Below are positions 1,679-55,706 of a DNA stretch of 64,000 nucleotides, one piece after another. This DNA is from Pocillopora damicornis (taxonomy: Eukaryota). The translations under genes and the position numbers were made by a program. The notes beneath the pieces are model-generated. The model did not search any database. It was not told the DNA's origin and saw nothing but the letters and a program-made list of their open reading frames with translations. Each line of letters begins with the position of its first letter. Position 1 is the stretch's first letter. Location of the stretch: positions 1 to 64,000 of the forward strand of contig NW_020843512.1 in the NCBI RefSeq assembly GCF_003704095.1. The letters are read 5' to 3'.

Positions 1679-2674
1679 TTACAAGCTGGTTCCAGGTCTA
1701 AAGTAGACAAACTTAATGCTATCCCGCTTGACTGCACTTTGTATGTCTCTGAGTGCCTTTTGAAGGACGTGAACGAAAATTGCTTCAACTTCTGCTGACC
1801 TGGGTTTTTCAAACATATGTAATATCTGCGAAAGGATTCCAAATACCCTCTGGGATGGTTTGCGCTGCATACAAGTAAGTTGTTCTGTTGTGCCCAGGAT
1901 GTGGCAGGCAGTCTTTTCCACGTTAGTAGTTGATACGGGCAAGGTAATCGTCTCGGGATCTGTCCGAGTCCGTTTGGCAGTACTCCTTCCTTGGGATTCT
2001 TTCATAGGCCGGTGAGCAGATTCATCTGTTGACGTAAACTGTTCATAATAATTAAGAAAGATAGGGTCTTGATTAGATTCTGTACTATGTATCATTTTGG
2101 GATTAGAGGGCTCTTTGAAAGTAGCACCTCCCCTATCAAATAAGGTGTCGTACTCAGGGGGCTCTCGTTGGTGTTTTCTTGCCTCCTCGGCTGGTATCTG
2201 TCGAAGAAACTGAACATCGTCTTTTGAAGAGTAAGAGGGCAGCGGGTGTGTCTGTGTGGAAACCTGACAATCCTCTCGAGCGGTGTAAGATGGCGAAGAA
2301 TTCTGCTGATCAATCTTATAAAAATCTCGGTTAAAACCAGGATGAGGTCCAAAGTCAGCCATCTGTCCCTCAAGGATCCTCTCAAACTCCTGAATGTCAT
2401 CTAGCAGCTGTTTTTCTGCATCGTGGTCCAGAATGGCTTGATTCAGGGACATCAGCTTGTCTCGATCATTATTCTTTCGGATGTTCACAGCTACGTCCGA
2501 AGGAGCCATGTCCCTGCCGGTGCAATTTCTTTGTTTGTCTTTTTGAAGTGTATTGGTATGCCTAGTTTGCAGCTTAAAGTTCACGCATTGTGGCAGAACA
2601 CACAGAGTGTCTGAACAATTCTTTCCATGAAAAGCATTATCAAAGCTCTTTTGAAACGTTAGTGTATGCTGCAT
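1679..2674 (-). CDS. TAZ-zinc-site + NCBD-like ('mini-CBP') family protein, copy 1 (about 331 aa; ORF is open up to 2800)
   Basis: Long open frame. It has an HCCC motif HGKNCSDTLCVLPQCVNFK (2629-2585) and a C-terminal ILSQILHMFEKPRSAEVEAIFVHVLQKALRDI shared with the other paralogs. The start is placed at ATG 2674 because the upstream hydrophobic stretch is a pyrimidine tract ending in TAG (2718-2720), i.e. a likely splice acceptor. Confidence 0.8.
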   Translation of the reverse strand: MQHTLTFQKSFDNAFHGKNCSDTLCVLPQCVNFKLQTRHTNTLQKDKQRNCTGRDMAPSDVAVNIRKNNDRDKLMSLNQAILDHDAEKQLLDDIQEFERILEGQMADFGPHPGFNRDFYKIDQQNSSPSYTAREDCQVSTQTHPLPSYSSKDDVQFLRQIPAEEARKHQREPPEYDTLFDRGGATFKEPSNPKMIHSTESNQDPIFLNYYEQFTSTDESAHRPMKESQGRSTAKRTRTDPETITLPVSTTNVEKTACHILGTTEQLTCMQRKPSQRVFGILSQILHMFEKPRSAEVEAIFVHVLQKALRDIQSAVKRDSIKFVYFRPGTSL

Positions 2675-4352
2675 AACCTCGGAAGGGTATTGAAGTCGGT
2701 TTATGTTGGTGAAATATCTATAGCAGAAAAACAAAAATACCATAAGGAGGAATATCCGTATGAACTTTAGCCCCTTAATTGCTAAGAGAGTGACCAGCAT
2801 CTAGTTTCTCCTTACAATATCAGTCCTGAATCACACATTAAGTCACGAGAATTAAGTAAATTATCGTCAACAAAAGAGGCTCTGAATTGCTCGCCAATTC
2901 TCCTTGTCAGCACCTTAGGAAATGTAAAGGGAACAGTCTGGAGAGAGTGGATGCTGATGTTAGGGTGTAAAGGTTTAAATAGTACAATCATCTCCATGCC
3001 ACGAGTGCAAAAGCACGTTCATGCTTACGAACCGAGCTGATTGCTTTCAATTTTCGCAGTTGATTAACAGTGCGAGAGAAACATGGAGGTATATTGTTTA
3101 ATTATTATGTAAATGATGAAAGGAAGTTCAAAATAATTTCACCGAGGGGCCACACAATCGAGCGAACTTATTTGTGAAAGAGAATGCAAAACAGTTTGTT
3201 CACGAAAAAAACTGGATCATTTTCTGCACTTTCATTAATTAATTTATTCTGACTTACGATATGACTGTAAAAAAAGAGGGAAGAAAGGTTGTCGTGGTCA
3301 CCTCTTCCATTAACAACCACAAGCGACCTATTATGGTCAAATCTATACAATCAATTTTGCCTCCAGCAAATTGTGGTCATGTTAATCTAAATTCTATTTT
3401 ATGATCTGTTCCAAATTGCATGTTTAGACACAAGTTATAGTCCATGTTTTACGAAAGCAAGTTCGTCAAAACTTTTGGAATTGTTTCCGTTTATAGTGCA
3501 AAGACCTTAACAAATTGTGTCTTGTAAATATGTTTTACAAGCCAGAAGATCAATTACATGCGGTCGAAGTTAATCAAACGAGTGGGAAACGACAAGAGTA
3601 ATGCAGGAAAAGGAACATGCTGAATCAGCCGAAAGAAGGAGAAGAGGAATCGAACCTTCTACTTGACATGTTTCTAATAAACATAGTTCCTATCCAACCA
3701 AAGTTCGATGACGTTAACATTGATAACTAAACACTGATCACACGTTAACACTTTTGAGTAAAAAACAAGATCTGCTCTCCGCAAAACCATTCCCATCGCC
3801 TCTCTTGACTTAAAAGGACGAGGACAGTTGACCGCGTAGTAGCCTACATTGACGCAATGTAAAATAGAATATTAATTACCTCGTGTCTTCGTGTTTGAAA
3901 ATGTCTCTATTTCTGATGCGCGTACTCCTGATAAAGTTTAAAGACTACGGAGACCACAAGCACATGATAGAACCGCCTACTCTGAGTTTACTCCGTTGAA
4001 TTTACCGCCTTTATAATAAACGATTTTACAAATTATATTTTGAACTTTCTAGAACATAATGACGAGCGTTTACGAAGGAGAATCCCGAACGGTGCCGACG
4101 CCTTAAGATATTGTGAAGTGGAGCTTCGAGAAAAATCGGTTTATGCAAATTACTTTGCCGTGGTTTCCGAAGAAAGAGGAAGATAGAACAATATTGTGTT
4201 CAATAGGAAATAAGCAAACCAAACTTAACTTAAGCAGTTATAGGGCATCCAGTTGCGGTTCATAAATCGATTAGGAAAAGCAGAAACCAAATGTAAACAC
4301 CAATTCTCTAAACAAACAAGGAAAAATATGTTTAAAAATAGCTAGAACTTGG

Positions 4353-4549
4353 TGACGTCAAGAATTCAACAATGATCCTCCCTGAACTAACCCAGCCGTG
4401 TAAAATCCAAATACGAAATATTTGTTTATTGTTTGATGTATCAAAGAGGGAAAAAATTCCAAATCCATGGGGAATTTCAAGTCCGTTGAGTGACATCAAG
4501 TTTTTTCGGTGTGCAATATTATATGCAAATTTTAATTGCGTGACGTGAC
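4353..4549. promoter_or_regulatory. Motif cluster upstream of copy 1: CRE, kB-like, octamer
   Basis: TGACGTCA 4353-4360, GGGGAATTTC 4469-4478, TGACATCA 4491-4498, ATGCAAAT 4523-4530, TGCGTGACGTGAC 4537-4549. Motif matches only. Confidence 0.35.
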
Positions 4550-7500
4550 AAATAGATCTGACTTGATTGAAAAAAACAAGCGCACGTTATGATCTAATGA
4601 ATACACCTAATTGACTTAAACGCTTTTAAAGTGTATTTTTTTAAACATGGAGAACAAAACGCGTTTTCAAATTTCACGCGATCAATCATCATCAATAAGC
4701 AATCGATTATCATCACTAAGTTCTAATGTCTCTCTTCGTGTTACTTGCGTCATGTCGTTGCGGAAATGTTTCGCGGTAACATTTACGTGGGCAGATCTCG
4801 GGGAACTTACGACTATTCCCGAGCACTTGAAAACATTTCAAGTGAAAATTAACAAAAGGGTTTGTCTATGAAAATACCTACGTAAGCAGAACTCGTGGGG
4901 CCACGACGACAACGGCCCGAGCACTTCCGAAGTACCTCTCGACTCAGAGTGATATAACCGAAAGTAACGAAGTTCAACTTGTAACACAATATCTGTGACG
5001 TGTTTTAATTCGTAAGCCTGTCTGCTTTGAAAACCTACACGTGGCGCTTGATAAACTGTATATAGGCTAAGGTTATGAATAACAAATATTCATAATAGCA
5101 CTGTAGAACTCCTCGACAACCCACCTGAAAACTTTGAATTCTTATAATCCTTCTATAAAAATCTCTTACAAAAGCGGAAAAAAAAACACGAAGAATCAAT
5201 AACACTGTAACAAGTTCCACCTCAAAAAACGGGAAATGTATCTTCAACATATCATCGCCCACGCCACGAGACTACATACACCTTAAACTCGTTGTTTTAC
5301 TCTTTATAAAATCAATTCGCACCCACGCATGAGACATGCCAAAAACTGCGGAAAAAACAGTATATTTGCTTCATTACGGTCGGGTGAAGATGAAGTTCAA
5401 ACGTGATAATCGTATTTCTTCAGTAAACACTTTCTAAAACTTTTACTTTGCGTCCAGTTTAGTATATGGTTTAACACATAAGCAAACCCAAAAAGTTGAG
5501 ACGGTTTCAGTTAATTTCATAGCATGTTACTGATACCGATGTAAAAAAAGAGAAGACGTTCAAACGTACAAATAAACACCCACGCTTGTACAAGTCCTAT
5601 ATGAAAAACCAAGATTAAGAAAATGATAAAAAGTTGCAAGTTAACTGTCAGTTAAAGGTTTCAGGGATTGAGATAAAAAAAAAAAAAAAAAAAAACAGAA
5701 GAACAAAAACTTATCAACCTTATATCAGTCATGACAGTTGCTGTTTGCGAGCAGACGTTTGTTATACTTAAACCTAAGCCGAAAAAACTTATTCATTATT
5801 ACAAGTGGATTAGCGGAAGTAGATTTCACTGAAACAACAAATACAACGGAAACAGAGACTTGGAGCGAACCCTCGCAATATCCAGACCCCAAGCCGACAA
5901 AGGCGCAAAAATACTGTATTCTTACGAAGGACATTGGCAGTGTAATGCTCCATAATTAATTCCGATGAAATAGTGGTATAACGGTATAACGTAGCTTCAG
6001 AAATGCGATGTGACTTATGTGAATTAACTAAGCTGTAACTTACGACACTTACTTTTATTTTCGAGAATGTCTTTTTTAATAACCTAGCTTATCATTGTTA
6101 ATTTCCTACTGGTTCTGCGCTAATGGTATCCTAACTGACGTTCTTTGAATTATTGAGCAATCTTCCCACGTTATACGAACAATACACTACATGGATGTCT
6201 CAGCGTAAAATTTATCTGAATTGCCGAATTTTCTACTACGAGTTTTTGTGCTTTCGTTGGCCAGTAAAAACAACAAACTTTCAGAGGCTTAATAAAAATT
6301 AGTCAAAAATGTTACTCTGTTATCCTAACTTTAATTATCATTGTTGATATGATTATTTAATATAAATCTAAACATTATTGAATATTCTGCAATTTTTCAG
6401 TCTCTGTCTGTATTATTAGTTTTATAATTCATTGTCATAGTTATCGTAAGAATTAATGGCCATAAGTTATTTCACCGATGATAACAATCTCTAAATCGAA
6501 CTCCGTCCACGAGGCATACCAGGCATCTAGAAGAAAAACACTTGAAATCGTTCACTTGAAAATTTAAATGACAAAACCTATCGAGACAGGAACACTCCAC
6601 TCAGTCGGTATTAAACACGCTGGGATCGGATGGGTGACTCTCTATACTCTCCTTAAAGTTTGATATTAGTGAGACAAGGAAACCCTGGAAGACTAAACTT
6701 GTCATCTTTATCATAATACCCATCTTTTAAACAGAAGCGCAAAAATACAATCGACTCTTGTTTTGACCAGTTGTATGAATATTTAATGAGTCGTGTAATT
6801 CAGGTCGATTTTTTGCCTTAGGGTATTTTGATAGTGCTTGGTAATCATACACTTTGATGAACTGTGCATGCGTGCGTGTCGGTACACGTTGCTTGAGATA
6901 AAGAAGGTTGTATCATCGAANNNNNNNNNNCCCCCGGACTGTAGTCTCAATCCTAGGAAGTATGATCAAGATGTCGTTGATATATGACTTGCCATTTTCA
7001 GGTAACTCGCAGCCTTACAACAGAAGACTTGCCCTCTAGTGCGTGACGGTTATAAGCGGGGGCGGTTTCCGGATTATAATACGATACAACGATTTAACGG
7101 TCGGTGCGCATTTCTCGCATATCGGTTGCGTGCAGATGAAAACCCTGAGGCCATTTGTGAATCAAAAACAAAACAGCTATTAGCGACGTCAAACTGAGCT
7201 CAGCAACACCGAAAACTGCTTGATTGCTCAATACATCCGTTGAATTAAAGTTTTGAATCGTTTCTTAAAGAGAGGCTTGATCATTAATTTCTAAGTAATC
7301 AAAAGCTCAACTAATTTTCAAGTTTGCCACGAAAATAAACTATGCTTAAGGATGTAAGGCAAGAGTCGCCGAGGGGAAGTTGAACGGTTCGACTTGGAAA
7401 TTTATGTAGCTTTCTTAACTCAAATAATCTAAACCGTCCGAGTGAGCCAATCATAAAGTCAGGAATAGATGACCCACAAAACACCTTATTGGAAGTCATT

Positions 7501-8584
7501 TTTCGATTTGAGAAGTAGATTCATCGGTCAATTCGACATTTCAGTAAGCTTGAGCATCCATGGAAGACCAAAAGCTGGTATTTGTATGTGTGAGAGCTGA
7601 TTAGAGAGCAGCTTCAAATCCCATTCGGCTGCAGCCATCCTGTTTTCTGCTGCCTCTGATTGTTCCAATGCGATGAAATTGGTTGAGAAAAAAAAGATAC
7701 CAATTCTAAAATAGCAAAAGAAAAATAATGTTTAATTCTGGAGATCCAGCTCTCAAGTAATTAATAAAGAGGAGGAAATAACAGGTGCACCGTTAGAGTT
7801 TATAGGGCATGGATAATTCCTTTCACGAAAGCCAACTTAGCCCGGTGCTGCTTGGGAAACCATGTAAATTACGATATTTTTGTGTCAATTCGGAAACTAG
7901 AAACAAAAGTTACATGCTACGACTTATGTATTCAAAAGCTCATGGAAGGAAATGCGTCACGTTATGGCAACGAGCTTTGTTTTTGATTGAAAATGCGTAG
8001 CCATGTGGAAGTGCTTTAAAGTAAACTCGGAAACACTAACGAGTCTTTGTGGCGGTTTCACAATGTTTCAAACGAACTTATTGATAAGTACGGGGGCGGT
8101 TTTATCATTGTAACAAAACAACGTCATTGTGCCCAGAATTTTCGTTATCGACCGGGGATAAATTGCCTTTAATATAAAGACAAGTGTAAAAAGAGGAATC
8201 TTGAGAGGTTTTGCTTCTACGACGTTTTCCCTTTTGGCCAGTTGTTAATCACGTGTCTACAGGTTGGTCAGAAACTTTCCAACTCTATACACTTAGGACT
8301 TAATTGCTAGTATGTTTGTGAGTTTACTGATGATCTGTTTATGTGCGTTGTAATTGTATCACTTTTAGAAAATATTTATCAGTTTTCACATTTGCGCTAT
8401 TTATCTCCGAAAGATGGTACAAACTGTTTGGACGTTAAATTGGAGCAGATTAGATTAGGATTCAACCACAAAAAGGCTTTAATTCTACTAAGATACTGTT
8501 CTAAATTGTGCTACTATGATAATCTTCTCTATAATAACAAGAAGAAAAACAAAAAGAAGTTAAATTATATAAATAACATTTATG

Positions 8585-8588
<4 letters not shown>

Positions 8589-8620
<32 letters not shown>
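8589..8620. repeat. (TA)n microsatellite
   Basis: Perfect TA run. Confidence 0.95.
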
Positions 8621-8625
<5 letters not shown>

Positions 8626-8659
8626 TATTAAACATTAGACATTTAACATTAACATTAAA

Positions 8660-8700
8660 CCCCTGAAGAGTGAAGCGATTCACGAAACAGGCTTGTCGGG
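8660..8700 (+). ncRNA. Minimal type I hammerhead ribozyme (Penelope/retrozyme type)
   Basis: CCC-CTGAAGA-GTGAA-gcga-TTCAC-GAA-ACAGGCTTGT-C-GGG. Intact CUGANGA and GAAA cores, 5-bp stem II with GNRA-like loop, self-complementary stem III, GUC cleavage triplet and 3-bp stem I. Confidence 0.75.
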
Positions 8701-8796
8701 ATATGTAGTTGCGTCGTTTTTTCCTCTCATAATATTTATTCTGCTCTGCTTCAACGTATTGAGCACTGTTCCACGCGAAAATCGACTTGCAGACTT

Positions 8797-8798
<2 letters not shown>

Positions 8799-8846
<48 letters not shown>
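8799..8846. repeat. (TA)n microsatellite
   Basis: Perfect TA run. Confidence 0.95.
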
Positions 8847-8849
<3 letters not shown>

Positions 8850-11800: not shown

Positions 11801-12536
11801 CGCACACCAGAGAGGGTTGGTCACGCACCAATTTTTAATTATTTGATAACATCTTTAAAATACTTGCCTGATTGATGAACGGAAATTTCTTTTCCCAATC
11901 AACTTTACGTTATGCACGCGATTGCCAAGATGTTGACACCTAACAAGCTTTTACCGCGATCGATGAGACCTGGCTTTATGGGTCACATGTACGTCATAAC
12001 CACCATTAGTTGCACGTGGTGAATGATGGAAGCTATCTAAGCTTTCCTGAAAAAGAAAAAGGATTATTAATGAAAAATAATCAATATAAATAACGAATAA
12101 GGAAATCACTGATTATGTATCTGTGTGAACGTTTCCCGTCAAGCCATCGGATCTCACTGTCAATGGATCACGCTTTTAGGTATAAACCTTTTAGCAATCG
12201 AGCGAGTATAATCAGAACTAATCAAAGCCAACTCCTCTTCGTATTGCAAACTCTGCACTTCAAGGATGGTACAAAATATTTGTCCTGTTCGACACAGGCA
12301 AAACTGATCGTTCATATGTGGGAAAAGTTTTTGATAAGTATGTTTAGGGTTTGTGAGTATAAGCTCTTTTGGTTTGTATGTTTATTTTCAATGAGTGAGC
12401 CTGACAGAGGATTCGCTGCGCTGCGTAAATTGGCAACGCTGTGGCAAACATATCTGTGCATACAGATCTTTTAAAGATTTAGGCATGAAATAATTACGTC
12501 TGTGTGTTCTCATTGCAGAAAAGGAAAGAAATCAAA

Positions 12537-33406: not shown

Positions 33407-34465
33407 TCACGGATCATAAACGAACGCCGTTGTAAGTTCCACCACGGTCCACATCCAAACTCTTTCCCCTGTTCTGACGTCACAGTCTTGAACCAGACCC
33501 TTGAGTGAATATCGCACTTCGCGGCAGGAGGATGTGCAGTTAGGGCAAACAGCTTTGGTCAAAAATCGAGGAAAACGATTTGGGTCGTCATCTACGCCCC
33601 AGCTCCAAGGGCACCTTGAGGTACCTGGCAACTGTACAGTGCCGTCACGGGTAGTTTGTCTTGAAGTTCTAGGAGCTGACTTAGTCCTTGAGACGAACAT
33701 GAAATGACGGCGAAGACGTTTGAGTGTTTTTTGAGGAGTTAGACTGGACACTGTTGGGCATGAGGAAACTTGAAGGGACCACGAAGTTACGCCCAAAATA
33801 ACAATCACGAGATAAATCTGACGATAAAACAAAATCATTTTCAATATTGCTTGAAGCTGACTCGAATACCCATTTCTGTTCTCTATGACTACCACGATAT
33901 GAATTCTCTCTCAAAATTTTAAACTTCGACTATTTTGAAAATGACTTCTTTCCAGGACACAAACTTTGTAGCCCAACTTCACTAACGCTTAATTACTCAC
34001 TCAACAGTCAAAAAGAGGATGGCAGGTAATCTGATGATCTTATGGCGTTAGATTTAATGACCAAAACAAACAATGCGCACAGGATACAGTAAATAGATAA
34101 GAAAACTGAAATATCATTTCTTAAAAGCTTATACGTGTAGGAAACTACAAAAATAAAACTATAAAAATAAAAGAGAAGAGTATACGAGTATCGTACAATC
34201 ATAGAAGAGAAAAAAAAATTGGTTTTAGTAAAGTTTAAATCAACTTCAGCGAAGATGCTTTATTTGTTGTTATTTTTGCATCTCAGTGGTGTGGAAGATA
34301 GTGCAAGAGGCCAACTTCACACTATAACGTCAAGAAAAACTAATACATTCCTAAATTATTCTTGAAATTTTAAATCGCTATCTTTGAAAAAACTATTCGA
34401 ACAATCCTGGCTGAGGAACTATTATTTAAAAATAAAACACTTACTTTGTTAAAATAGGAAGCCAT
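33407..34465 (-). CDS. IL17: IL-17-like cytokine C (143 aa; exons 34465-34445 and 33817-33407)
   Basis: SRCPWSWGVDDDPNRFPRFLTKAVC is the IL-17 signature. Exon 1 MASYFNK|GTAAGT splices in phase 0 at TTTTATCGTCAG|IYLVIVILG to give a signal peptide. Confidence 0.85.
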
Positions 34466-34574: not shown

Positions 34575-34643
34575 CTTTTATATCATCCGTTTTTCCCTTG
34601 TGTAATTAAATTTTATCTTTCTTCATCCTTTCGGAGCACTCCC
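34575..34643 (-). promoter_or_regulatory. IL-17 C promoter: TATA and kB-like site
   Basis: TATAAAAG at 34582-34575 (same GATG.TATAAAAGA context as IL-17 B) and GGGAGTGCTCC at 34643-34633. Confidence 0.5.
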
Positions 34644-35725: not shown

Positions 35726-35821
35726 CATGATTATAGCAATTTGCACAGCTTTAAGGAGAATAGGAAGTTGGCTAGACTAGGAAGTTGTTATAGTAGATCC
35801 ATGACACACTTAAGATATATT

Positions 35822-38868: not shown

Positions 38869-38907
38869 TTAGGGATCATAAATGAATGCCACCGGAAGTT
38901 CAACCAC
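38869..38907 (-). CDS. IL17: IL-17-like cytokine D, 3' end only (rest in gap)
   Basis: VVELPVAFIYDP* matches the C-termini of the other three copies but is identical to none; truncated by Ns at 38908. Confidence 0.7.
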   Translation of the reverse strand: MVELPVAFIYDP

Positions 38908-39282
38908 NNNNNNNNNNNNNNNNNNNNNNNNNNNNNNNNNNNNNNNNNNNNNNNNNNNNNNNNNNNNNNNNNNNNNNNNNNNNNNNNNNNNNNNNNNNNN
39001 NNNNNNNCCAGATACTGATATTGATCCGAAATATCTATAGATCTTCAAATAACATGGCAAAATGTGAGATATTCAGTTTACTAGATCCAGACTTGTGTAT
39101 ATGGAATTTTCCATAGATCTGCTGGTAACTTGATAAAATGTAACGTGACTATTACTGCTTTTAGTTTAGACATCTCTATGGTAGTTTCTGCAGATATATT
39201 TGTAAATATTTTATTTCTCATATCTAAAGCACACACACACATATATAAATACATATACATAAGTTAATCGTGTCAAATGAAT

Positions 39283-39314
<32 letters not shown>

Positions 39315-40059
39315 TTGCGTCGGTGGGAGAGTATAACAAGGTATTCATCGACCGAGTTGAGTTCTTTACGGTGGCCAATTTACGTTATCAACTCAGTTGA
39401 TCATTCTAAATCACCCTGTAATCATGTTAGCCAGGGGAAGCAATTTGGGGGAAACTCAAGGCTGACATAATTGACTAAGCCAAGGCAGTAGTAAGACTTT
39501 GTGAGTGAAAGCTCTCCAATACATCTTTTACATCGGTAGAATTTACTGTAATTGCTTATAAAATCCATTGTGAACCAAATGTGAATCTTGACGTCATCGG
39601 TGATTTATTACTGTACAGGCGCACGGCAACATGGGATATATTTGTAAAATTGACAAAAGCTCTCGATCTATGAGCGCGCGCGAGAATTGCTACAGCTAAT
39701 GTAAACAGAACTTGAAGCAATAGATTTCACTTTAACTTTAGTTAACACGCAAACAACTGGTAAGGAAAGGACTTTATTTGTGTGGGTCTGTGACTACAAA
39801 AACAACTTCATTTGTTCTTTCACGAACAAATGCTCAGACCATGATGGTTTTGCGCACTTTTGTCGCTCAAAGTAGTCTAAAAAACTCATTTAAAAGGAAA
39901 CGTCTACAGTGTTAATTAAATCATTAAGACGTCTGACAGACGTTCTCGGACGAATCTCTCCAGAGCATTACGTCACGATTAAATCCCCCCTCATAAATCA
40001 CAAATTCTTAATTCATATTTCTTTTAGTTTAATCACCAGCAGATTAAAGGTCAGGGACC

Positions 40060-41381
40060 TCAGGGATCAAACAAGAATGCTACCGGAAGTTCAATTTCAG
40101 CCCACTTCCAAACCACTTCCCCAGTTCTGACATCACATTTCTGCTCCAGGCCCCTATGAGAGTATCTTACTGCGCGGCAAAAGTGCTTACAATTAGGACA
40201 CACGGCCTTGGTCAGGAATCGAGGGACACGATTTGGGTTGTCATCTTGTGCCCAGCTCCAGGGACACTTTGAGTTTCCTGGCAGCTGCTCGGTGACTTCA
40301 CGAGTTCTCCGCCCTGGAATTACAACAGACGACCGCGGTGAAGCTGAAGGTTTCTCGACAAACATGAAATTTCGGCAAAGACGTTTCAGGATCTTTTGAG
40401 AAGTAAGAGGAACTTTCGTACATGAAGGAACTTGTAGAGAGGATGAAATTATGCCAAAAAGGAAAAGTGCCACAAAAAGCTGTTTTAAAATAAAAACGTT
40501 CAACAAATGATAAGTATTTTGTTTCCAAATCCACACTCATTGATAGGCTCCTAGATTAATTTTTTTAGAGTCATGCAGTTACTTACATTGGTGCACTAAA
40601 AGCAAACACTGTACTTAGCGGAGAACAGGTTTTAATTTTGTCGGCTGCTCATTTTTAAGGTGCAGTCCAGACTCGATATGTTAAATTTAGTTTTGTTTGT
40701 TCCCCCTAAACATTATTGAGAATACCCATGAAGAATTCAATCTTAAACATCTCACTGTTTTATCTGTCCAAATTATGGCGCTGAATATTGTCTGAAAATA
40801 ATCGTCAAATAATCAATAATCGTACATCAGTTTTCCCTCGGAGTTTGGCATAAGAAATTCCACATCTAGCGTTTAAATCACCTGATTACGGTATCTTGGT
40901 TCACTTGAAATCGCGAGTAAGGCATGTACATCGGCCCTCTAGCGCTCATAATAATTTTTCAAGACCTCATTCTTACTGTTCTCACTGAATATGCTCGAAT
41001 CTGCTCCACTAGGCGCTATACTTCGTCTTGAACAGTGTAAAAGCGAAGTGAAAGGATTTTTTACCAATGTTAAACAAAATAAGGTTTGGAATGCCTAACT
41101 TCTCTTGAGAGACCAACCTCTCCCCAGAGTCGTTCACTTTTTGCCTTAGTACAATTCTAATATGACTCTTGATCAAAACGTTTTAAACAGTCAAGCCTAC
41201 ATGATAGGGTATAAATGGTACATCTTCGGGATTTAAATCAGTCATGAATGAATGAATAACTCGGGGCACAAATCACTTACTAAATGCAAAAAAAAAAAAA
41301 ACCTCAAATAATATCTGCGACAGTAAAAAAGGCTAAGGGAAACGAAGTAAATTTACTTACCTCTTGTGATGGTGAACCCAT
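40060..41381 (-). CDS. IL17: IL-17-like cytokine A (146 aa; exons 41381-41361 and 40479-40060)
   Basis: SKCPWSWAQDDNPNRVPRFLTKAVC. There is no in-frame ATG in exon 2. Exon 1 MGSPSQE|GTAAGT joins TTTTAAAACAG|LFVALFLFG in phase 0. Confidence 0.87.
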
Positions 41382-44373
41382 GTCTCTCCAAAATCTTCAC
41401 AGTTGACTCTATACTTGCGTTTGGGAGTGAGGCCAAGTGTTGTTTAATATACTGTCACACGTTATTTAATAAGCAACACAAAAGCCCAGCCTCTTTTGTA
41501 CCATCAATTTGTGTATACCTTTACATAATATTTTGGGTTGATTTCAAGAAACCTTTCCCTTTCACACCCATATCTTGTGCATGTTCCGTTGCAACAGTAT
41601 CCATAAAGCCGGGGAATTTTTGTGAAATACAAGGATGATAAAATTACTAAAAAGGTATTATTCGCCCAACAAAGGTCACTTTGTGAATAAAGTTATCCGT
41701 GGTTATACTTCAGTCTGATCAGATCGGAAATCTAAATTAAGCTCTTCTGTAGGGCTAAGGAAATCTCTTTATTCACTAAGTGTTTTCTTAATATGACTGA
41801 TGGGTATTTATTTTGGAAATATTAGGAGTCGATGGCTGCGTATGGATACTAAATTTATGCAAGAAGAGAAGATGACGACGTTCGTCCAGAAGCTGGCGTG
41901 TTATAATCTGTGTATTGCAAAACATAAATTAATTCTGTTGCATTAATGACAGGCAAAAAACGCATTTGGAGAGTTAGGAGAGCCGCCTTATTACTTCATC
42001 GCCTGTAAAGTCAGCATGCGGAAGTGCTGTTTCAACAAGTTTTGTCACGAAAATAAATACAAATGCCTCAAACAGAAACGTTTTTATTTAAAAAAAATTA
42101 GAATTCAATCTCAAAAAGTTTGGTAAATTTAAAAAATTCTTCATCAAACGTAAAACCGCCATGTTGCTATGTAGTTATATCTTGTAACAATGACAACAAT
42201 GATTCTTATTTAAAGGATATAAATAGTATTTTCGCTAAAAGAGGTGAATCTTTTTCAGTGCTTTTCAAACCAAGAAATTTGTACCTTGATTCCATTTTTA
42301 TTCGTTATCTCAAATCCAAATTATGCAGAGATAAAGTTTTCGACTCACTATAAAACGGAAATATACATTCAAGGAACACACATTTATAAAGTCTTGAGCA
42401 TATCACTAACGGCAAGTTCACCAACAGAAAAAAGATCAACTCCAACAGATCACGGTTCGTGTTTTTTCTTGTTGCATCTCAATAGAACCCCCTAGTTTCA
42501 GTATCAGTGCCATCAAAAGGAAAGCAACAGGAATTGACATTTTGGTCAAACACATTTCAACTAGATGAAGCGGAAAAATTACCGCACCCTTAATCTTCAG
42601 CTGACAAGCAAGTCCGACGTTTCTTTCATCTTTAGCGCTAGCTTAGAGGTACAAGTTTATGTGCTGTATACTGTTATGATGGAAATCCTTTTCGATCCAA
42701 TCCTTTTGAGTAGCAAGTGAATTAATACCAATAAATTGAAATGTTTTGTTCATTAACAGATTCAGTCATATCGTTTGCGCTTTTTGACATGGTGATTTTT
42801 GTGAAAACGAAACGGAAAAAAACACTTGATTAACGCAAGGAATTTAAAGAAGCTTTAAATAAATAACTTCTTACTACGACACATTTATTTAAAGAAGCTT
42901 TAAATAAATAACTTCTTACAACGACACAGTGAAATAACTGAACAAGCCTCTCTCGACTTAAGTAATTTCCCATGTTTGTATCCTTCAGCCTCGTTATCAA
43001 CTCGAGGCTAACATTTTAACTATGCCATCCCGTTCTTATCCCAACTGCCAACCACAAAACACCGTCAAACGTTTCTGAATTATTTATTTGTTCTCGAGAA
43101 AAACGCCACTATAACGCAATGTCTTCTTCGGCGGGCAATTTTTTTTCTTAAGTGTTCGAGAACGGACCATACAAGAAACTCATTTTTCAGAATTGGCGTA
43201 AATATCCGGAATAGTATTCTTATCAGCCATTGTTACCAAATTACAAATTTGAAGAGGTAATAGATCATTAGCATTTTACTTCAAGAGGATAATTATGTTG
43301 ACGTACATACTTTAATCGACATTCTTAGTAAATCATAACTTTCTGAGACTAATTTTTTTCTATATTTCTGTACATCTTGGCTGTAAATGTGTTTTCTATT
43401 TTATCCATTTCAAATGTATTACACTATTTGGTATTCGTGTATGTGCTCTTTTAAAGCTTCAACCTTTTAATTGTAATTTTTCAAAATTATTTTAGCTACT
43501 ATGCTATTTTGCGGTTAGGGAATAGTGTATCCCATGTGTAATTCATGTGGTTATAAGGTTGATACGTCTTAGATGATGTGTAAATATTTTAAAATTGAAG
43601 AGACAATGTTGGTGACTTATCTCTCTTGGGTGTTAAAGAAAAGAAGGGTATAATAATTCTGCGGTCAGTTAACTTGAAAGCTTTCTTAAATAAGTACTTT
43701 GGATCCAAAAGGGGTACGTTAATCGTCTGGTGCAGTCTCTGACACAAAACAACTGTTTTAATAGAGTGAAAGCAACTTAACGCGTGAAAAAAACGTTTTT
43801 GCAAGGATAGTGTTTTTCGCTTTAAAGGCGATTCAAATTGTCGTTTCTTACCTCCCTTGAGGAAATAACGTCATTTGTAATGCTTCTTGAAGACTATCTC
43901 AGTGATAATCGTCTCCACCCTCAGAAATAATCACGTTTAGAGTCTAAACTTCTCGCCGAGGTCAATTTAGGTCGCAAAGAGGGAGTTATCCCGCGTATGA
44001 CGAAACGTGTCTTCTCCAAATAGCTGGAGGGGCGCACGCAAGTAAAACTATCTGGGGGGTTTCTGAAAACCTGTGAAAAATGTGAAAAATTGATCTAAGG
44101 AGCGGGATTACAATTATTGAAATAGAAAAGTATCTAAGTTGTGTGTGAAATCATATAACTGAAGCGTGAAGGATGTTTGACATCTCTTGTTACATTCGTT
44201 GAAGCAAGGTCACTTTAGACCAAAACTGTTTCATTTCCAAGTCATGTGGAGTTTTCTGTTGTTGATTATTATGGTATCACACTACAAACTATAACGATCT
44301 GAGGTTTTATATCTATCAACAAAGAAGTAGAGGCGATCAGGGCTATTTGTGAATCTGTTGTGGGAATCTGTAA

Positions 44374-44528
44374 GGCCCCGGTTGTTCAACTTGAAGGGTG
44401 GATAACGCTATACACTGAATAACTCAGCTCTATCTAGTGGATACTGCAGTACGTTTTGTAAACACTCAACCGCTGGATAGCGATTCATCCGTCGGATAGT
44501 TTTATCCGCCCTTTATACAACTGGGCCC
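44374..44528. mobile_element. Small MITE present in both duplication arms (also about 46378-46523)
   Basis: GGCCCCGGTTGT ... ACAACTGGGCC termini with internal TGGATA/TATCC palindromes. Confidence 0.6.
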
Positions 44529-47500: not shown

Positions 47501-48799
47501 AACAATGTACAGAAATGAAAAAAAATTAATTTGAAAAAGTTATGATTTACTAAGGATGTCAATTAAAGTATATTCGTCAACATGATTATCCTCTAGAAGT
47601 AAAATGCTAATGATCTATTACCTCTTCAAAATTTGTAATTTGGTAACAGTGGCTGATAAGAATACTATTCCGGATATTTGCACAAATTCTAAAAAATGAA
47701 TTTATTGTATGGTCCGTTCTCGAACACTTAAGAAAAAAAAATTGCCCACCGAAGAGGACATTGCGTTATAGTGGTGTTTTTCTGGAGAACAAATGATTAA
47801 TTCAGAAACGTTTGATGGTGTTATATGGTTGATAACATTATATATAACAACGCAAATTGTTTTGAAATATAGGCAATGAAAAGGAGAAAAGTAAGACGAG
47901 TTAAAAACAGTTATTTCACCGTTCAGAAATCTAATTCTAATAGTTAAGAGAATAAGCTTACTGGTTTCGGAAGAAGAGCTTGACAGTAAGATGAAGTTCT
48001 CGGAATTTAGGGAAACGCCTTGACTTAATATAATGAGATTAGAACGGGATGGAACAGTTAAAATACTAGCCTCGAGATGATAACGAAGGTGAAGGATACA
48101 ACCAAAGGAAATTACCTAAGTCCGGAGAGGCTTGTTCAGTTATTTCACTGTGTCGTAGTAGGAAGTTATTTGTTTAAAGCTTCATTAAATTCCTTGTGTT
48201 AATTAAGTGTTTTCTTTCTCTGTTCCGTTTTCACGATAATCACTTTGTCAAGAAGCGCAAACAATGAGACTGAATCTGTTAATGAACAAAATGTTAAGTT
48301 TATCCGTATTAATTCACTCATTACTCAAAAGGATTGGATCGAAAAGGTTTTCCAACACAACAGTGAACAGCACATAAACTTGTACCTCTCAGCTAGCGCT
48401 GAATTCGAGAGAAAAGTCGGACTTGCTTGTCAGCCGAAGATAAAGGATGCGGTAGTTTGTTTGCGTCATCTAGTTGAAATATGTTTGACCAAAATGCGCA
48501 CTTCCTGTTGTTTTCCATTTGATGGCACTGTTGCTGAAACTATGTATCCATGCGCGGCCATCGGCTTTTAAAATTTCCAAACAAAACTCAACCCATTTTT
48601 ATATTAAGAAAATACTTAGTGGATAATAAGATTTCCTTAGCCCTACAGAAGGGATTAATTAAATTTCCGATCTAATGAGACTGAAGTAAAACCACGGAGA
48701 ATCTTATTTTCAACCAAAGTGATCTTTTTTTGTGTGTATAATACCTGTTTAGTAGTTTTGTTATCCTTTTATTTTACCAAAATTTCCTTTATGGATACT

Positions 48800-48904
48800 G
48801 TTGCAATGGAACATTCCCAAGATATAGGTGTGAAAGTGAAAGGTTTCTTGAAATGGACCCAAAAAATTTACTGTAAAGGTAAGCACAAATTGATGGTATA
48901 AAAG
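48800..48904 (+). promoter_or_regulatory. IL-17 B promoter: C/EBP half-site, kB-like, IRF-E-like, TATA
   Basis: GTTGCAAT 48800-48807, GGAACATTCCC 48808-48818, GAAAGTGAAA 48832-48841, TATAAAAG 48897-48904, about 110 bp before the ATG. Confidence 0.55.
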
Positions 48905-49010
48905 AGGCTTGGCTTTTGTGTTGTTTATTAAACGAGTGACAGTATATCAAACAACATTTGGCCTCACTCCTAGACGCAGGCAGAGTCAACTGTGAAGATT
49001 TTGGAGAGAC

Positions 49011-50358
49011 ATGGGTTCACGATTGCAAGAGGTAAGTAATTTTATTTTTTTTCACTCAGCCTTTTTTATTGTCGCAGATATTATTTGATTTTTTTTGTTT
49101 TTTTTTTTTTGCATTTAGTAAGTGATTTGTGTCCCAAGTTATTCAGTCATTCATAACTGATTTATGTCCCAAAGATGTACCAGCGCTGTTACATCTGTTG
49201 CACTAGATCCTATCATGTATAAGCTCGACTGTTTAAAACCTTTCGATTAAGAGTCATTAAAAGGCAAAAAGTGAACGATTCTGGGGGGAGAGGGTCGTGG
49301 GCGTCTTTTAGGGGAAGTTTGGCATTCCAAACCTTGACTTGTATAACATTGGTAGCAAAGCCTTTCAGTTCCCTTTTACAGTGTTCAAGACGAAATATAG
49401 CGCCTCGTGGGATCAGATTCGAGCATATTCAGTCAGAATAGTTAGAATGAGGTCTTGAAAATTTGTCAGTATATTGTGCATGCAGAGCACTGCAGCCAAT
49501 GTACATGCCTTACCTACGATTTCAAGTGGACCAAGATACCGTAATCAGATAATTTTAACGCTAGATGTGGAATTTCTTAAGGGAAAGTCCCCCGTCCTCC
49601 TCCCCACTCAAAGGGAAAACGAATCCGGAAAAAAGGGAAAATGTGTAAATTACTGAGCTTTGGACAGATAAAACAGTGAGATGTTTAAGATTGAATTCTT
49701 CATGAACTGAGGAGAACAAGCAAAAACGAAAATCAGTTAATCGAGCTTCCGGCCTGCACCTTAAAAATGAGCAGCCGAAAAAACTAAAAGCTGTTCTCAG
49801 CTAAGCACGGTGTTTCTTCTTCGTGAACCAATTTAAGTAACTGCATGACTCTAAAAAGTTAATCTAAGAACCTATCAGTGAGTGTGAATTTGGAAACAAA
49901 AAGCTCATCATTTGTTGAACATTTTTATTTTACAACAGCTTTTTGTGGCACTTTTCCTATTTGGCATAATTCCATCCTCTCTTCAAGTTCCTTCATGTGC
50001 GAAAGTTCCTCTTACTTCTCAAAAGATCCTGAAACGTCTACGCCGAAATTTCATGTTTGTCGAGAAACCTTCAGCTTCACCGCAGCCGTCCGTTGGGATT
50101 CCAAGGCGGAGTACTCGTGAAGTCACCTTGCGGCTGCAAGGATACTCAAAGTGCCCCTGGAGCTGGGCACAAGATGACAACCCAAATCGTTTTCCTCGAT
50201 TCCTGACCAAGGCCGTGTGTCCTAATTGTAAGCACTTCTGCCGTGCAGTGAGGTACTCTCATAGGGGCCTGGTACAGAAATGTGATGTCAGAACAGGGGA
50301 AGTGGTTTGGAAGTGGGCTGTAGTTGAACTTCCGGTAGCATTCTTGTTTGATCCCTGA
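49011..50358 (+). CDS. IL17: IL-17-like cytokine B (146 aa; exons 49011-49031 and 49939-50358)
   Basis: SKCPWSWAQDDNPNRFPRFLTKAVC. Exon 1 MGSRLQE|GTAAGT joins TTTTACAACAG|LFVALFLFG in phase 0. Confidence 0.88.
49581..49592 (-). promoter_or_regulatory. Canonical NF-kB site in IL-17 B intron
   Basis: GGGAAAGTCCCC is the reverse complement of GGGGACTTTCCC, containing the classic Ig-kappa site GGGACTTTCC. Confidence 0.55.
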
Positions 50359-50855
50359 GGTTCCTGAGCTTGAATCCGCGGTTGGTGATTTCGATGTGAA
50401 ATTATAAGAACGAGTGACATTAAACTTAAAGAAATATGAATTTTGAATATGCGATTTATGAGGAGCGATTTAATCAAGACGTAATGCTCTGGAGAGATTC
50501 GTCCGAGAACGTCTGTCAAACTTTATTTTCTTTAATGATTTAATTAACACTGTAGACGTTTCCTTTTTAAATAATTTTTTTAAACTACTTTGAGCGACAA
50601 AAATGCGCAAAACCATCATGGCCTGAGCATTTTTTCGTGAAAGACCAAATGAAGTTCTTTGTGTAGTCACAGAACCACACAAAATAAAGTCCTTTCCTTA
50701 CCAGTTGTTTGCGTGTTAACTAAAGTTGAAGTGAAGTCTATTCCTTAAAGTTCTGTTCACAATAGCTGTAACAATTCTCGTGCGCGCTCATAGATCGAGA
50801 GCTTTTGTCAATTTTACAAATATATCCCATGTTGCCGTGCGCCTGTACAGTAATT

Positions 50856-51227
50856 AGGGACCTTAAGCAAACCACGACGGCGACGGCAACAAGGACGTGG
50901 AAAAACAAAAGATCTAATTGGCAGAACAATAGCTCAGCAAGTGCGTTTTAAAACTTTGTACATTTCTTAGCCGTCCTATGCAAAACAACAACGTGAAATC
51001 ACCACAATTTGCGTCATCTGCGAACCGAAACCGCGACGGCAAATTTTTGTGATTTCCAGTTGGAGCTCAACGCTTCTTTTATACGTTATGCTGAAGTTGA
51101 GGTGTGGCGCTGTATGAGACGGTAAACACATGCAGCCATTTTTTAAATTCTAATTAAAGGCAGAAATTTATTTTTTAATCGAGGTCTTCCCTAGCGTTGC
51201 CGTCCTGACTCTCGGCTTAAGGTCCCT
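50856..51227. mobile_element. PIF/Harbinger-like MITE with ATT target duplication
   Basis: ATT|AGGGACCTTAAGC ... GCTTAAGGTCCCT|ATT. The corresponding site in the other arm (about 39605) is empty. Confidence 0.9.
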
Positions 51228-51427
51228 ATTAATCATTGATGACGTCAAGATTCACATTTGGTTCCATTACTGACCAGACCCAAGGAAACATGGAGTCTAT
51301 TTGTTCTTTCATGATAGAGAAGCAAAAAATGTAAATGGCGACGTCATCTAGCCGTCTATCCTTCAATAGATTATGAGTAAGAATCCATCAAAATGTGTGC
51401 GTAATTCAGCCTATTATCATTCAGTGG

Positions 51428-51925
51428 ATAGAGATTACTCCATGGAAAGTACGCACGAACGATTTTTATTCACGAGTCGCGGTGCATAAAAAAAGAGTTT
51501 TTTGATGCATGGTAACGAGTGAATAAAAATCGTTCGGGCGCACTTTACATGATATAATGTTTTCATTTCACACATAATGAGATTTTTTCTTTCCGACCAA
51601 CACATTTCAAAGATTGGATGCCGTTTAATTGCAAGAGCAAATTTTATTATAAACACCGCCAAAATGACGTAATCTATGGTTCCTTCAAGGAAAGCAAAAC
51701 TTGGAACTTCTTCTTTCCTTTTGTTTTTACGGAAAGGCGAGCGCTTGTTGCCCTCCATTTTGAAGAATAATATCGTTCGAGTGACTGATTGCACGAACGA
51801 TGCATTTTCACCGTCGTTTGCTTTTCTGATTGGTTGGTTGTGTACCACGTGCGCAGGCTCTTTTTCCATGTGTAAATCTTGGTACGTATGAAATAGAAGG
51901 TTACCGGTCATAAAAATTACCAAGA
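51428..51925. repeat. Hairpin-type interspersed repeat (related fragments 53000-53135, 57590-57676)
   Basis: Shared ATAGAGATTA..CATGGAAA..CGATTTTTATTCACGAG and the inverted GTGAATAAAAATCG. Confidence 0.55.
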
Positions 51926-53271
51926 GATTGTAATCTCTTGAAATTACAAAATTTGGTAACACTGGGTTTTCCTTACTTGGCTGGCAATAGAATTTCAATG
52001 CTCGTGGATTCACTTTAGTATCGAATATTGGTGACGTTATTTCTATGATCAATGAGGTTATAGACAATGATTTGTTATCTTGATATGTAGTAACATGTAG
52101 AGATCAATCTTTAAATAACACCTTTTTAAACAAAATAATGGGTACGAATCATTTCAGGAAGGTACAGTCATATCGCAAGCTTAAGCCATTACAGGAAATA
52201 AAAGAGAATTTCAATAGAATTTGATTTTTCTACACGCAAGTTAACCTTGAGTTGAAAACTTAGCTCTGGAAAGGAAACTGAAGGAAATTAATTTTTGGTT
52301 TGGCTACCGCTTTGAGTGGCACGAATGCTAGACTTCGCTTGACAGTTGAAGACTGAAGGAAGCATATGAATTTCCAAATTACGCACGTCCTGTTAATCAC
52401 ATAAGCCGAATCTGGGCGATATCCGAATTACAAAATAACTTACACATGAAAATATTTCCGTATTGGGACTTCATCATTTGTTGAAATCCTCCAACAAACT
52501 TAAATCTGTTCTCTCAGAGAGAATCAGAGGTGTCTTCCTAAATATAAAATAGTCCATTCTATATTCTACATTGTCAATTCAATTAAAAAAAATAAAAATA
52601 AGTAAGTCGATGAACAAACATAAATAACACTCCCAGAGAATTTCCCTTCTATAACAGTGAAGTTAATTTTCATTTCTGACCCGTTAACCAAAAGAGGAAG
52701 ACTGATGAGTTATTAATAGCAGCAAGACTGTTTGTGTAATTGAAGTTACTTTTAGAAATACCCCACGCCCTTTCCTATCTGTGAATGCAAATAGCATCCA
52801 CTAATTTCCAATTTTAAATTCTATTCATAAATTCTGGACAGCGTGGGAGTAGTATTGTTTATTTCCCAATGTCCAGTTCAGTTTCCTTTGAACTGCACTG
52901 GATACGAAAACGCGAGAAAAAAACCCTTGGATGCCAAGGTGATCAGTTTTATTTACAAAGTTCCCTAAGCTTCACAATTTGACTTGTTCGGTAATATGTT
53001 ATACGTATCAGAAAACTCACTTTGTGTAGTATCAGAAAACTCACTCGTTCGCTGCGCTCACTCGTTCGTTTTCTGATACTACACAACTCGTGAATAAAAA
53101 TCGTACGCGCGCATTTTCCATGAAGTTATCTCTATAAGTATGATCACTGAGATCATCGATAACACTTAATACTCTGTATCCCACTACAAAGAATCAAGCC
53201 AGAGACCCTCGGATTTTCCGGTCCGATGCTCTACCAATCAGAACTAAACGGTAAATTACGAAAATGAGCAG

Positions 53272-54146
53272 GATTTCTTGACTTGAATCAGTGCTTTATG
53301 TAATAGATAAATTATGATTTGAGAAGAGGGGGTAGGTTTTTAAAGCAACTGTTGGTTCCGTAAAGAGTTTTAAAGCTGACCGCGTTCCGATCGTTAGCCC
53401 TTCGTCAGAGCGAATTATGTTACATTTGTTCTACATTCTCTCACTGAAATATTGTCTTATACGATTTTTGTCTGGATTTGAACGAGTCAAAGTCGAAATA
53501 TGTCCAGTGTTAACGATGACATATTTGTCCATACTTGACGCAAGAGTAAATGCATAATCGCCCTGACTATTCTCAAGACAAATGCATCAGTTATTTGCCT
53601 TCTAAGCAAATATTCACAATGTTTAACAAAACAAATTTCATGTCAGAATCACATTTGTAAAATAGTTATTTTTATCCAAATTTATCTTTTCACCTAGTGT
53701 AATTATTTGCAATTCCAGGATCACGAGCTCCGTTTTCTCTATCCTCTTAGTGATAACAGACAGCCCTGAAACGGCTTTGTTGTCTCGGTGAGACTGCAGT
53801 TTTGATGCTAAGTGAATCTGATCAATTGCCAAAGAACCCTCTCAGCTTTCTGTTTGCAATGGGAGCATTTCTTCGTGTTTTTAATGACCTGTCTGATTAG
53901 GAAGGATTCCGTGACTTCAAAGAGACATCTTCCGCTTCTTTTGTGATACTGGTCAAATAGAGTAAATATGAAGAATACAAGAACCCCGTGCTCGATAGTA
54001 CATAAGGAAGTACATTGTAGAGCCATTTTTTATTTCATCTATTTCTGTCTTGAGATTTCGTCCATCACTGTGTGGAGATTAAATCAATAGCTATGTTGGA
54101 GATAACATTGAGAATACGCTGCCGTCCATGTCGGTCTTGGACATGA
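53272..54146. repeat. About 870-bp segment inverted-duplicated at 61257-62133
   Basis: Near-identical reverse complement; duplicated short ORFs 53808-54026 and 61377-61595. Confidence 0.9.
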
Positions 54147-54746
54147 NNNNNNNNNNNNNNNNNNNNNNNNNNNNNNNNNNNNNNNNNNNNNNNNNNNNNN
54201 NNNNNNNNNNNNNNNNNNNNNNNNNNNNNNNNNNNNNNNNNNNNNNAGAAATTGCAAATTTGGTTTTTGATTCTCTATGAAATTGCTAATATACTCGATC
54301 TGTTACCTTAAATGGCCATGCCTGTCGTGTGATTCTGGACTGCATCAGCAAGGAAGTTAAATGAAAATGTCAGGTGTTGTTCAGCCACATTAATTTTCCC
54401 TGAATGAAATAGTTAGTCCCTCTAAAACAGTTATCACTAAGGCTTTAAGGGTTATTACAACCACATCACTAAAAATTCAGATGCCGGACCACGTCGACAT
54501 TGGCTTAAACATGTCACTTAAAATACCTATTTCGTATTATGGAGTGAAGCCAGTAAACCTGATTGAAGGGACGCTCATTTACTCTACCGTCATTGAATAA
54601 TTTCTTCCTCCGTTCCCTTGTTTTTAAACTATATAATTCATAGCACTCTAATTTTCTATAGAATGAACAGCTTCCTTAAGCTCTAGCGTGATGGAAAGTC
54701 ATTGTGTGTGTGATTGGAAACACATTACGGGCGACGAGGCCTGTCA

Positions 54747-55706
54747 TCATGATGAGAGTTTGCCACTAGACAGGCATTTCGCCTCCCAAATTTCATTCAA
54801 AGCCTTTTGTAATACATGTACACAATGTTCTTCAAGTTCTGCCATGCAAGGATCATCTAACGCTTGAAAAATTAAAGAAAGGATTGCAAACAACTTTCTA
54901 GTACAATTTACACGGTGGGATGGCTTACGTGCGATTTCACAGGCGTTCTCAAACTTCCTCGCCTTGAAATGTTCGTAAAGACTGCTTCGGACATTGGGTT
55001 TGTTGTTGTTGGAACCTTCCAACAAGCTTGATTCAAATCCCATTATTCCACACTCGCCACCATTCGCACAGTATTGCATTTGGGGGTGAGATGAGCTATT
55101 GGTGGCTTTCAGGGGAGCTCTGATCATAACTTGTGAATCATGCGACAGCGCAATAAAAGCAGACCGGCTGGGCTCAGTTTGTTCAGTCGCCAATGGCTGA
55201 CTTACGGAAAACAGTTGGCGATTGTAGGTTTCAATGCTTTTCACCAAACCAGAGGATCTTTGGACAGAGGGAGATCGAGGAATTGCATCACCCAACCAAT
55301 GAATTGCACCAAGAGGTTTTGCCTGTGATTGGTCTCCAACCAAATGCTTCTCGTAGCCTAAACGACATGATTGTAATGCAGGCATGGGTTGGTCTTGTCG
55401 ATGATTCCAATCATCCTGTATCGCATTCGCATGGGTGTCCTGAAATAAAGTAATGTTGTCGATACTTCCATCTGCAGGCTGCTCCAACACTCCAAGACTT
55501 TGAAGGTCCTGCCACCATAGTTCCATATTGTCCTCTGTGTCCGAAGCACTGTGAGACCTACGTTTGCGGTTAGCTACTCTGTGGTCTGTATCTGTTTTCA
55601 TTTTCCCAACTTTGGAGTTGATGCACATAGGAAGAGGACAGTCCCTTTCTGAACATGGAAGACCGGCTGGATGACTGAGATCTTCTTGCATGGATTTTGC
55701 AGCCAT
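54747..55706 (-). CDS. TAZ-zinc-site + NCBD-like family protein, copy 5 (319 aa)
   Basis: HPAGLPCSERDCPLPMCINSK, RKRR, ELWWQDLQSLGVLE and ILSLIFQALDDPCMAELEEHCVHVLQKALNEI. Acceptor TTCTTTTCTTCTCGCCAG lies shortly before the ATG. Confidence 0.85.
   Translation of the reverse strand: MAAKSMQEDLSHPAGLPCSERDCPLPMCINSKVGKMKTDTDHRVANRKRRSHSASDTEDNMELWWQDLQSLGVLEQPADGSIDNITLFQDTHANAIQDDWNHRQDQPMPALQSCRLGYEKHLVGDQSQAKPLGAIHWLGDAIPRSPSVQRSSGLVKSIETYNRQLFSVSQPLATEQTEPSRSAFIALSHDSQVMIRAPLKATNSSSHPQMQYCANGGECGIMGFESSLLEGSNNNKPNVRSSLYEHFKARKFENACEIARKPSHRVNCTRKLFAILSLIFQALDDPCMAELEEHCVHVLQKALNEIWEAKCLSSGKLSS

Follow-up and report, generated by a model that had tools for sequence, protein, structure and literature searches.

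The question raised by this locus is whether a cluster of small coral genes is an offshoot of CBP/p300 that does without its enzymatic part. The window, that is, the whole analyzed stretch of 64,000 nucleotides (contig C147 of Pocillopora damicornis), contains five intact paralogous genes, designated as c1 to c5, and one pseudogene of the same family. The original prediction described them as small CBP/p300-like genes that encode TAZ zinc sites and an NCBD-like module, without a histone acetyltransferase (HAT) domain, a bromodomain, or a KIX domain. Sequence comparison supports the descent of the family from the TAZ2 domain of CBP. As an explanation of the whole locus, a coral family derived from the last exon of CBP, with a putative role as adaptor or competitor, is favored with moderate confidence.

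Genes in the Window and Their Common Module

All six copies have a helical module of roughly 45 residues in common. In tblastn searches within the window, the C-terminal ends of c1, c4, and c5 were linked (e-value about 1 × 10−6), as were c1 and c2 (1.6 × 10−4) and the N-termini of c1, c3, and c5. Comparison of the modules with hhalign, based on ortholog alignments, gave 1.8 × 10−16 for c1 versus c4/c5, 1 × 10−9 for c1 versus c2, and 1.3 × 10−4 for c2 versus c4/c5. The similarity of the c3 module is weak (P-values from 0.0014 to 0.04), yet the identical gap-free register was obtained in all three comparisons. Of the five intact genes, only c2 lacks the N-terminal HCCC motif. The number of zinc sites is two in c3 (sites 1 and 2), one each in c1, c4, and c5, and zero in c2; none of the zinc-motif His and Cys residues varies within any ortholog set. 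The predicted content of the cluster, five intact open reading frames (ORFs) and one pseudogene with a common module and an HCCC motif in four copies, is confirmed by the ORF list, tblastn, and hhalign. The genes and their parts are as follows.

1679..2800, minus strand: c1 ORF, 373 amino acids (aa) as listed
2522..2659, minus strand: TAZ2 remnant of c1, one HCCC zinc site and the His of site 2
1715..1864, minus strand: C-terminal helical module (NCBD-like) of c1
3901..3964, minus strand: non-coding 5′ exon of c1, from the spliced Logan transcript L021 of a related coral, with an in-frame stop 5′ of the ATG
12504..13667, plus strand: c2 ORF; the gene occupies 12537..13667, 376 aa from M12
13203..13349, plus strand: module of c2
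15295..15681, minus strand: c2-type pseudogene with two in-frame stops, module still recognizable (tblastn 3 × 10−18)
16740..17882, minus strand: c3 gene, 380 aa, single coding exon
17676..17834, minus strand: half-TAZ2 of c3, zinc sites 1 and 2 with TAZ2 spacing, site 3 absent
17178..17324, minus strand: module of c3, mid-protein, the most diverged copy, without the central Pro
16743..16817, minus strand: conserved acidic-hydrophobic motif at the C-terminus of c3, activation-domain-like (dN = 0 against the ortholog)
18386..18455, minus strand: non-coding 5′ exon 2 of c3, from the spliced Logan transcript L016
19323..19369, minus strand: non-coding 5′ exon 1 of c3 (part seen), from transcript L016
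22533..23387, minus strand: c4 gene, 284 aa; one HCCC site at 23271-23387 and module at 22542-22673
54747..55706, minus strand: c5 gene, 319 aa; one HCCC site at 55590-55706 and module at 54762-54902

For c1, the probable start of the coding exon is the acceptor near 2720-2725. At 2702-2704, where the start codon lies in the ortholog transcript L021 and in the c1-type paralog c1b (L027), the assembly reads ATA. The next in-frame ATG is M43, and the zinc motif is still downstream of it.

No TAZ motif is present in the c2 protein, which contains the module together with an acidic motif, a basic patch, and the conserved sequences VDLT and FIALEDT. In the alignment of c2 orthologs (A5), VDLT and FIALEDT near the C-terminus and the basic patch KRPR are all conserved. 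Presumably, VDLT and FIALEDT resemble SUMO-interaction motifs.

The AlphaFold2 model of full-length c3 has a mean pLDDT (predicted local distance difference test) of 40.6, too low for fold search. The family proteins are mostly disordered.

Descent from the TAZ2 Domain of CBP

The Pfam zf-TAZ model (PF02135), whose gathering cut-off is 25 bits, scored c3 at 18.8 bits and c1 at 13.2 bits, both under the cut-off, and did not match c2, c4, or c5. It matched 11 of 11 c3 orthologs, all under the cut-off, with the best e-value of 2.4 × 10−4. When the profile of the c3 family (A2) was searched against PDB, the significant matches were all p300/CBP TAZ2 over zinc sites 1 and 2 (best e-value 7 × 10−6), and the match list contained no TAZ1 chains. 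All 12 matches of the c1-family profile (A3) were p300/CBP TAZ2 (best e-value 0.0025), and the top three matches of the c4/c5-family profile were TAZ2 as well.

A genome scan with PF02135 and its follow-up, performed on the 234-Mb assembly of 4,393 contigs, revealed a second cluster of the family, with four genes on contig C1554 (C1554:83000-123400; L002, L037, L004, and L027).

C1554, L004:301-1749, minus strand: T1, complete three-zinc TAZ2 and C-terminal module, 482 aa
C1554 cluster: T2, eroded TAZ and module
C1554 cluster: T3, complete TAZ only, 177 aa
C1554 cluster, L027: c1b, c1-type paralog

T1 and T3 have three zinc sites each and pass the PF02135 cut-off, with 38.1 bits and 42.9 bits, respectively. 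T1 matched p300 TAZ2 in PDB with the e-value 7 × 10−14, and no TAZ1 entry at e-values up to 1. The identity between T1 and the TAZ2 of the coral's own CBP is 36% (e-value 3 × 10−14), and that between c3 and T1 is 51% (e-value 1 × 10−12). The C-terminal module of T1 is the family module (hmmsearch 4 × 10−6, hhalign 7 × 10−6). A complete TAZ2 and the family module occur together in T1, and the copies in the window are thus eroded members of a TAZ2-plus-module family.

The profile matches to p300/CBP TAZ2, together with the comparisons of T1 with CBP and of c3 with T1, support the predicted origin from CBP TAZ2. The wording "TAZ zinc sites" overstated the case with respect to the fold. No copy in the window has the three HCCC sites of a TAZ domain; the copies have only two, one, or none of them, and complete TAZ2 is confined to paralogs outside the window.

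The module profile detected additional copies on C1554, C3161, and C1689. The RefSeq protein XP_027041735.1 from P. damicornis is an exact paralog protein. In another assembly, c3 is on a contig of 1,374,789 bp, and the longest contig with T1 is of the same size; the two clusters are thus probably linked. A complex prediction of the T1 TAZ2 (residues 1-100) with the T1 module (425-482) gave a score of 0.01, which is evidence neither way. On C2134, an ORF of 261 aa (L005:1534-2319, plus strand) is matched by Pfam zf-TAZ at positions 20-71 with 17.8 bits.

Is the Module a Diverged NCBD?

In the coral's own CBP, TAZ2 and NCBD are encoded by one terminal exon, which starts inside the ZZ finger. 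In T1, c1, c3, c4, and c5, the zinc motif is N-terminal, the module is C-terminal to it, and both are in one coding exon. The order is that of the CBP C-terminus, with the module at the position of NCBD, as predicted.

A balanced module profile of 13 sequences (A7) was searched against the whole PDB set of 177,635 sequences. The top match was an NCBD, 7osw_A, with the e-value 0.17 (conditional e-value 9.7 × 10−7), and the alignment covers helix 1 of NCBD, the loop, and helix 2 without gaps. Another NCBD, 6es5_B (e-value 2.1), was also among the top six matches. Both are ancestral NCBDs, resurrected at the level of the deuterostome/protostome ancestor (PMC8967867). A form of this kind might be the one that an ancient offshoot resembles most. 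Between A7 and the coral's own NCBD, hhalign gave the P-value 3.8 × 10−4 over 38 gap-free columns, in a register identical to that proposed in the original prediction. In the shuffle control, none of 700 shuffles reached the observed score of 20.1 (mean 8.2, standard deviation 1.7, z about 6.9). With a larger profile of 44 sequences, the score was reached by two of 500 shuffles.

Several results weigh against the identification as NCBD. The Pfam Creb_binding model (PF09030) did not match any of the whole proteins or isolated modules at e-values up to 10, and genome-wide it matched the true CBP only. With A7 in HMMER, the NCBD of the coral itself scored only 3.7 bits, and single-subfamily profiles were not significant against NCBD (P-values from 0.06 to 0.6). 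Extant human and mouse NCBD chains are absent from the PDB matches of the module profile. The AlphaFold2 model of the module (13 sequences, pLDDT 82.9) consists of a helix at 3-17, a Pro loop at 18-23, and a helix at 24-49; there are two helices, not three, and the break between NCBD helices 2 and 3 is absent. Fold searches with this model by Foldseek and VIA-align returned generic helical hairpins only.

These results would fit a family that is derived from TAZ2 and whose module came from a lineage-specific or other source, its likeness to NCBD reflecting a common amphipathic helix-loop-helix pattern. The e-value of 0.17 is not significant in a blind PDB search, and STI1 and a coronin coiled coil follow within 1 to 2 bits. 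On the other side, NCBD was the hypothesis set beforehand, and it ranked first, with a second NCBD entry in the top six. The hhalign result in the predicted register and the location of the module C-terminal to TAZ2, as in the terminal exon of CBP, also argue against an unrelated source, which is considered possible but rather doubtful. The predicted likeness to NCBD was thus reproduced by the top PDB match and the hhalign comparison, and was not reproduced by Pfam or by the predicted two-helix hairpin. On these sequence comparisons, it is reasonably probable that the module is a diverged NCBD.

The module could also be a SERTA-type motif as in the SERTAD/TRIP-Br co-regulators. The points for this are a resemblance of the pattern and shared acidic C-terminal motifs only, while no Pfam scan of the family returned a SERTA match, and this identity is highly improbable. 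The SERTA model (PF06031) recognized two genuine SERTA genes, both on C1921, and had no match in the window at e-values up to 10. A module-like match at 42123-42323 is weak and probably due to chance. Nothing relevant emerged when PDB was searched with two other profiles, A6 (five module sequences) and A5 (the c2 family at full length).

Gene Structure and Independence from CBP

The exon structure was revealed by two Logan contigs. L016, from a related species with 86% identity, maps to 19369-19323, 18455-18386, and 17883-16725. L021, from a related coral with 80% identity, maps to 3964-3901 and then to 2719-1630. In both, short non-coding 5′ exons are joined to the coding exon, and in-frame stops are present upstream of the ATG. 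All family genes have a pyrimidine tract and an AG acceptor 0 to 30 nucleotides before the ATG, and each is composed of a single coding exon behind the splice acceptor and non-coding 5′ exons. All analyzed coding sequences are single exons; exons were never joined, and gap letters were left unfilled.

A splice acceptor before each ORF could also mean that longer CBP-like genes with a HAT domain end in these ORFs as their terminal exons. The non-coding exons of L016 and L021 with their in-frame stops refute this reading, and the ortholog from Desmophyllum is annotated as a single-exon gene. In the genome scan, HAT_KAT11 and KIX were found on C2761 only, beside TAZ1, TAZ2, and NCBD; the single HAT/KIX gene of the genome is on a contig other than that of the window. 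No HAT, bromodomain, or KIX match was obtained in Pfam scans of the family proteins, again as predicted. That the ORFs belong to such longer genes is therefore extremely improbable, and the family members are independent genes, not terminal exons of CBP.

Purifying Selection and Distribution in Corals

Orthologs were found from Stylophora, including LOC111338957, as well as from Desmophyllum and Montipora; their names go no further than "uncharacterized" or "TAZ-type domain-containing." For c2, exhaustive searching with HMMER yielded 25 representatives. The exact proteins of c3, c5, and T1 occur in more than 100 sample blocks each, while c2 was read on 19 contigs and c4 on 22; the contigs shown with exact family proteins are mostly Tara Pacific metagenome scaffolds.

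The ratio of nonsynonymous to synonymous substitutions (dN/dS) was calculated by the Nei-Gojobori method. For c3, it is 0.38 overall, with 0.08 for TAZ, 0.16 for the module, 0 for the acidic tail, and 0.73 for the linker. For c1, it is 0.39 overall and 0.21 for the module. With values of about 0.38 for whole genes and from 0.08 to 0.21 within the domains, the predicted expanded family is under purifying selection.

The copies might instead be functionless decaying duplicates with ORFs intact by chance, given one clear pseudogene, the graded loss of zinc sites, the ATA at the start codon of c1, and the high dN/dS of the linker. The low dN/dS of the domains contradicts such decay, as do the invariant His, Cys, and module residues and the orthologs in both the robust and the complex coral clades. 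In addition, spliced transcripts exist in related corals, and the exact proteins recur across many wild colonies. For c1 and c3, the reading as decaying duplicates is contradicted; for the family as a whole, it is very unlikely.

Proposed Origin and Function

According to the favored explanation, the window contains part of a tandemly expanded family of stony corals (Scleractinia), which encodes small, mostly disordered proteins and would be descended from the last exon of CBP/p300, which encodes TAZ2 and then NCBD. T1 would keep the ancestral layout: a TAZ2 with all three zinc sites comes first, then a disordered linker that contains an acidic-hydrophobic motif, and finally, at the C-terminus, the module of helix, Pro loop, and helix. 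In the copies of the window, TAZ2 would have been eroded to two zinc sites (c3), one (c1, c4, and c5), or none (c2), and the module and the acidic motifs are under purifying selection.

TAZ2 is a main docking site on CBP/p300 for activation domains. Through the TAZ2 remnant and the module, the family proteins may interact with the activation domains of transcription factors, and either these factors would be withheld from CBP or co-activators would be recruited by the acidic motifs of the family itself. Since they have no enzyme part, the proteins probably bind transcription factors without acetylating anything. Basic patches similar to nuclear localization signals suggest a nuclear location, and the most likely role would be a non-enzymatic one in the nucleus, as adaptor or competitor where transcription factors meet CBP. 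A point against this role is that one or two zinc sites cannot form the canonical TAZ fold, which makes TAZ2-like ligand binding by the copies in the window doubtful. CID, the partner of NCBD in vertebrates, is deuterostome-specific (PMC5419745), and thus any partner of the coral module must be something else.

A selected and expanded stand-alone offshoot of CBP without the enzyme would provide naturally occurring CBP variants of the dominant-negative or adaptor type in a basal animal. It would also provide a graded series of zinc-site loss, and in addition a test case for the evolution of molten-globule interaction domains. For coral biology, the family represents at least ten unannotated candidate transcription co-regulators, which are conserved in reef-building corals and adjoin IL-17-like genes. 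A more far-reaching proposal, to be regarded as tentative, is that this could be the first NCBD outside CBP/p300. Both activation-domain-binding modules would have been kept and the chromatin-modifying parts shed, and the members, with anything from three zinc sites to none, would modulate the access of transcription factors to CBP or compete for it. If true, it would provide a natural series on how a disordered interaction domain evolves free of its parent protein.

Assembly Gaps and Neighboring ORFs

Runs of N in the window are at 1038, 6921, 28305, 30894, 38908, 45687, 54147, 59205, and 60353. None is inside a family ORF or between the domains of one ORF, and no reading frame crosses a gap; the nearest are about 500 bp past the stops of c1 and c5. 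Scaffolding affects only the order and spacing from c4 to c5. Metagenome contigs with c5, which are independent of the assembly, reach the edge of the gap at 54147-54246 and continue into a copy of 57676-57986, which suggests a repeat at this gap.

Between c4 and c5 are two IL-17-like ORFs, 33407-33895 and 40060-40536, both on the minus strand, with Pfam IL17 scores of 22.4 and 18.9 bits against the cut-off of 24. An ORF for an OTU-like cysteine protease (62668-63751, plus strand), scored at 40.5 bits by Pfam, extends over the end of a second ORF (205 aa) and may be carried by a mobile element. The ORF antisense to c3 (16726-17256, plus strand, 176 aa) is not a gene; it arises from the low complexity of the Ser-rich coding strand.

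Comparison with Known Systems

The closest counterpart is the C-terminal region of CBP/p300. T1 has an HCCC domain with the identical spacing of Cys and His, which is partial in the window copies. A helical module with a Pro loop, alignable to NCBD without gaps, follows the zinc domain in the same order, and in the CBP of this coral one exon encodes both TAZ2 and NCBD. In contrast to CBP/p300, the family lacks KIX, bromodomain, PHD/RING, HAT, ZZ, TAZ1, and the Gln-rich tail. The window copies retain zero to two of the three zinc sites, and their module has two predicted helices and is below Pfam detection. The linkers of the family contain acidic-hydrophobic motifs, which are absent there in CBP.

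TAZ domains outside acetyltransferases, presumably protein-binding, are also seen in the plant BTB-TAZ proteins and in a cluster of the ESM Atlas. Searched with T1, the ESM Atlas returned TAZ clusters only, at 0.80, including one cluster of small TAZ proteins whose commonest phylum is Nematoda; no usable match was obtained with c1. These HAT-less proteins differ in their partner domains (BTB in plants), and the series of zinc-site loss is a feature of the coral family. To our knowledge, there is no NCBD-like module in plant BTB-TAZ or nematode-type small TAZ proteins. HAT-less TAZ proteins elsewhere and the coral family are probably of independent origin. No account of the family turned up in the literature on coral TAZ proteins and zf-TAZ or under the locus names. 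HAT-less TAZ proteins are known already in other lineages, while the coral TAZ2-plus-module family is undescribed.

CITED and SERTAD/TRIP-Br proteins are small and disordered, with short helical motifs and an acidic activation motif, and they bind co-activators, not DNA. There is no sequence relationship with the coral family; CITED has no zinc motif, and the SERTA model is unmatched. By description, the coral proteins are similar to them in being small and mostly disordered, with short helical and acidic motifs.

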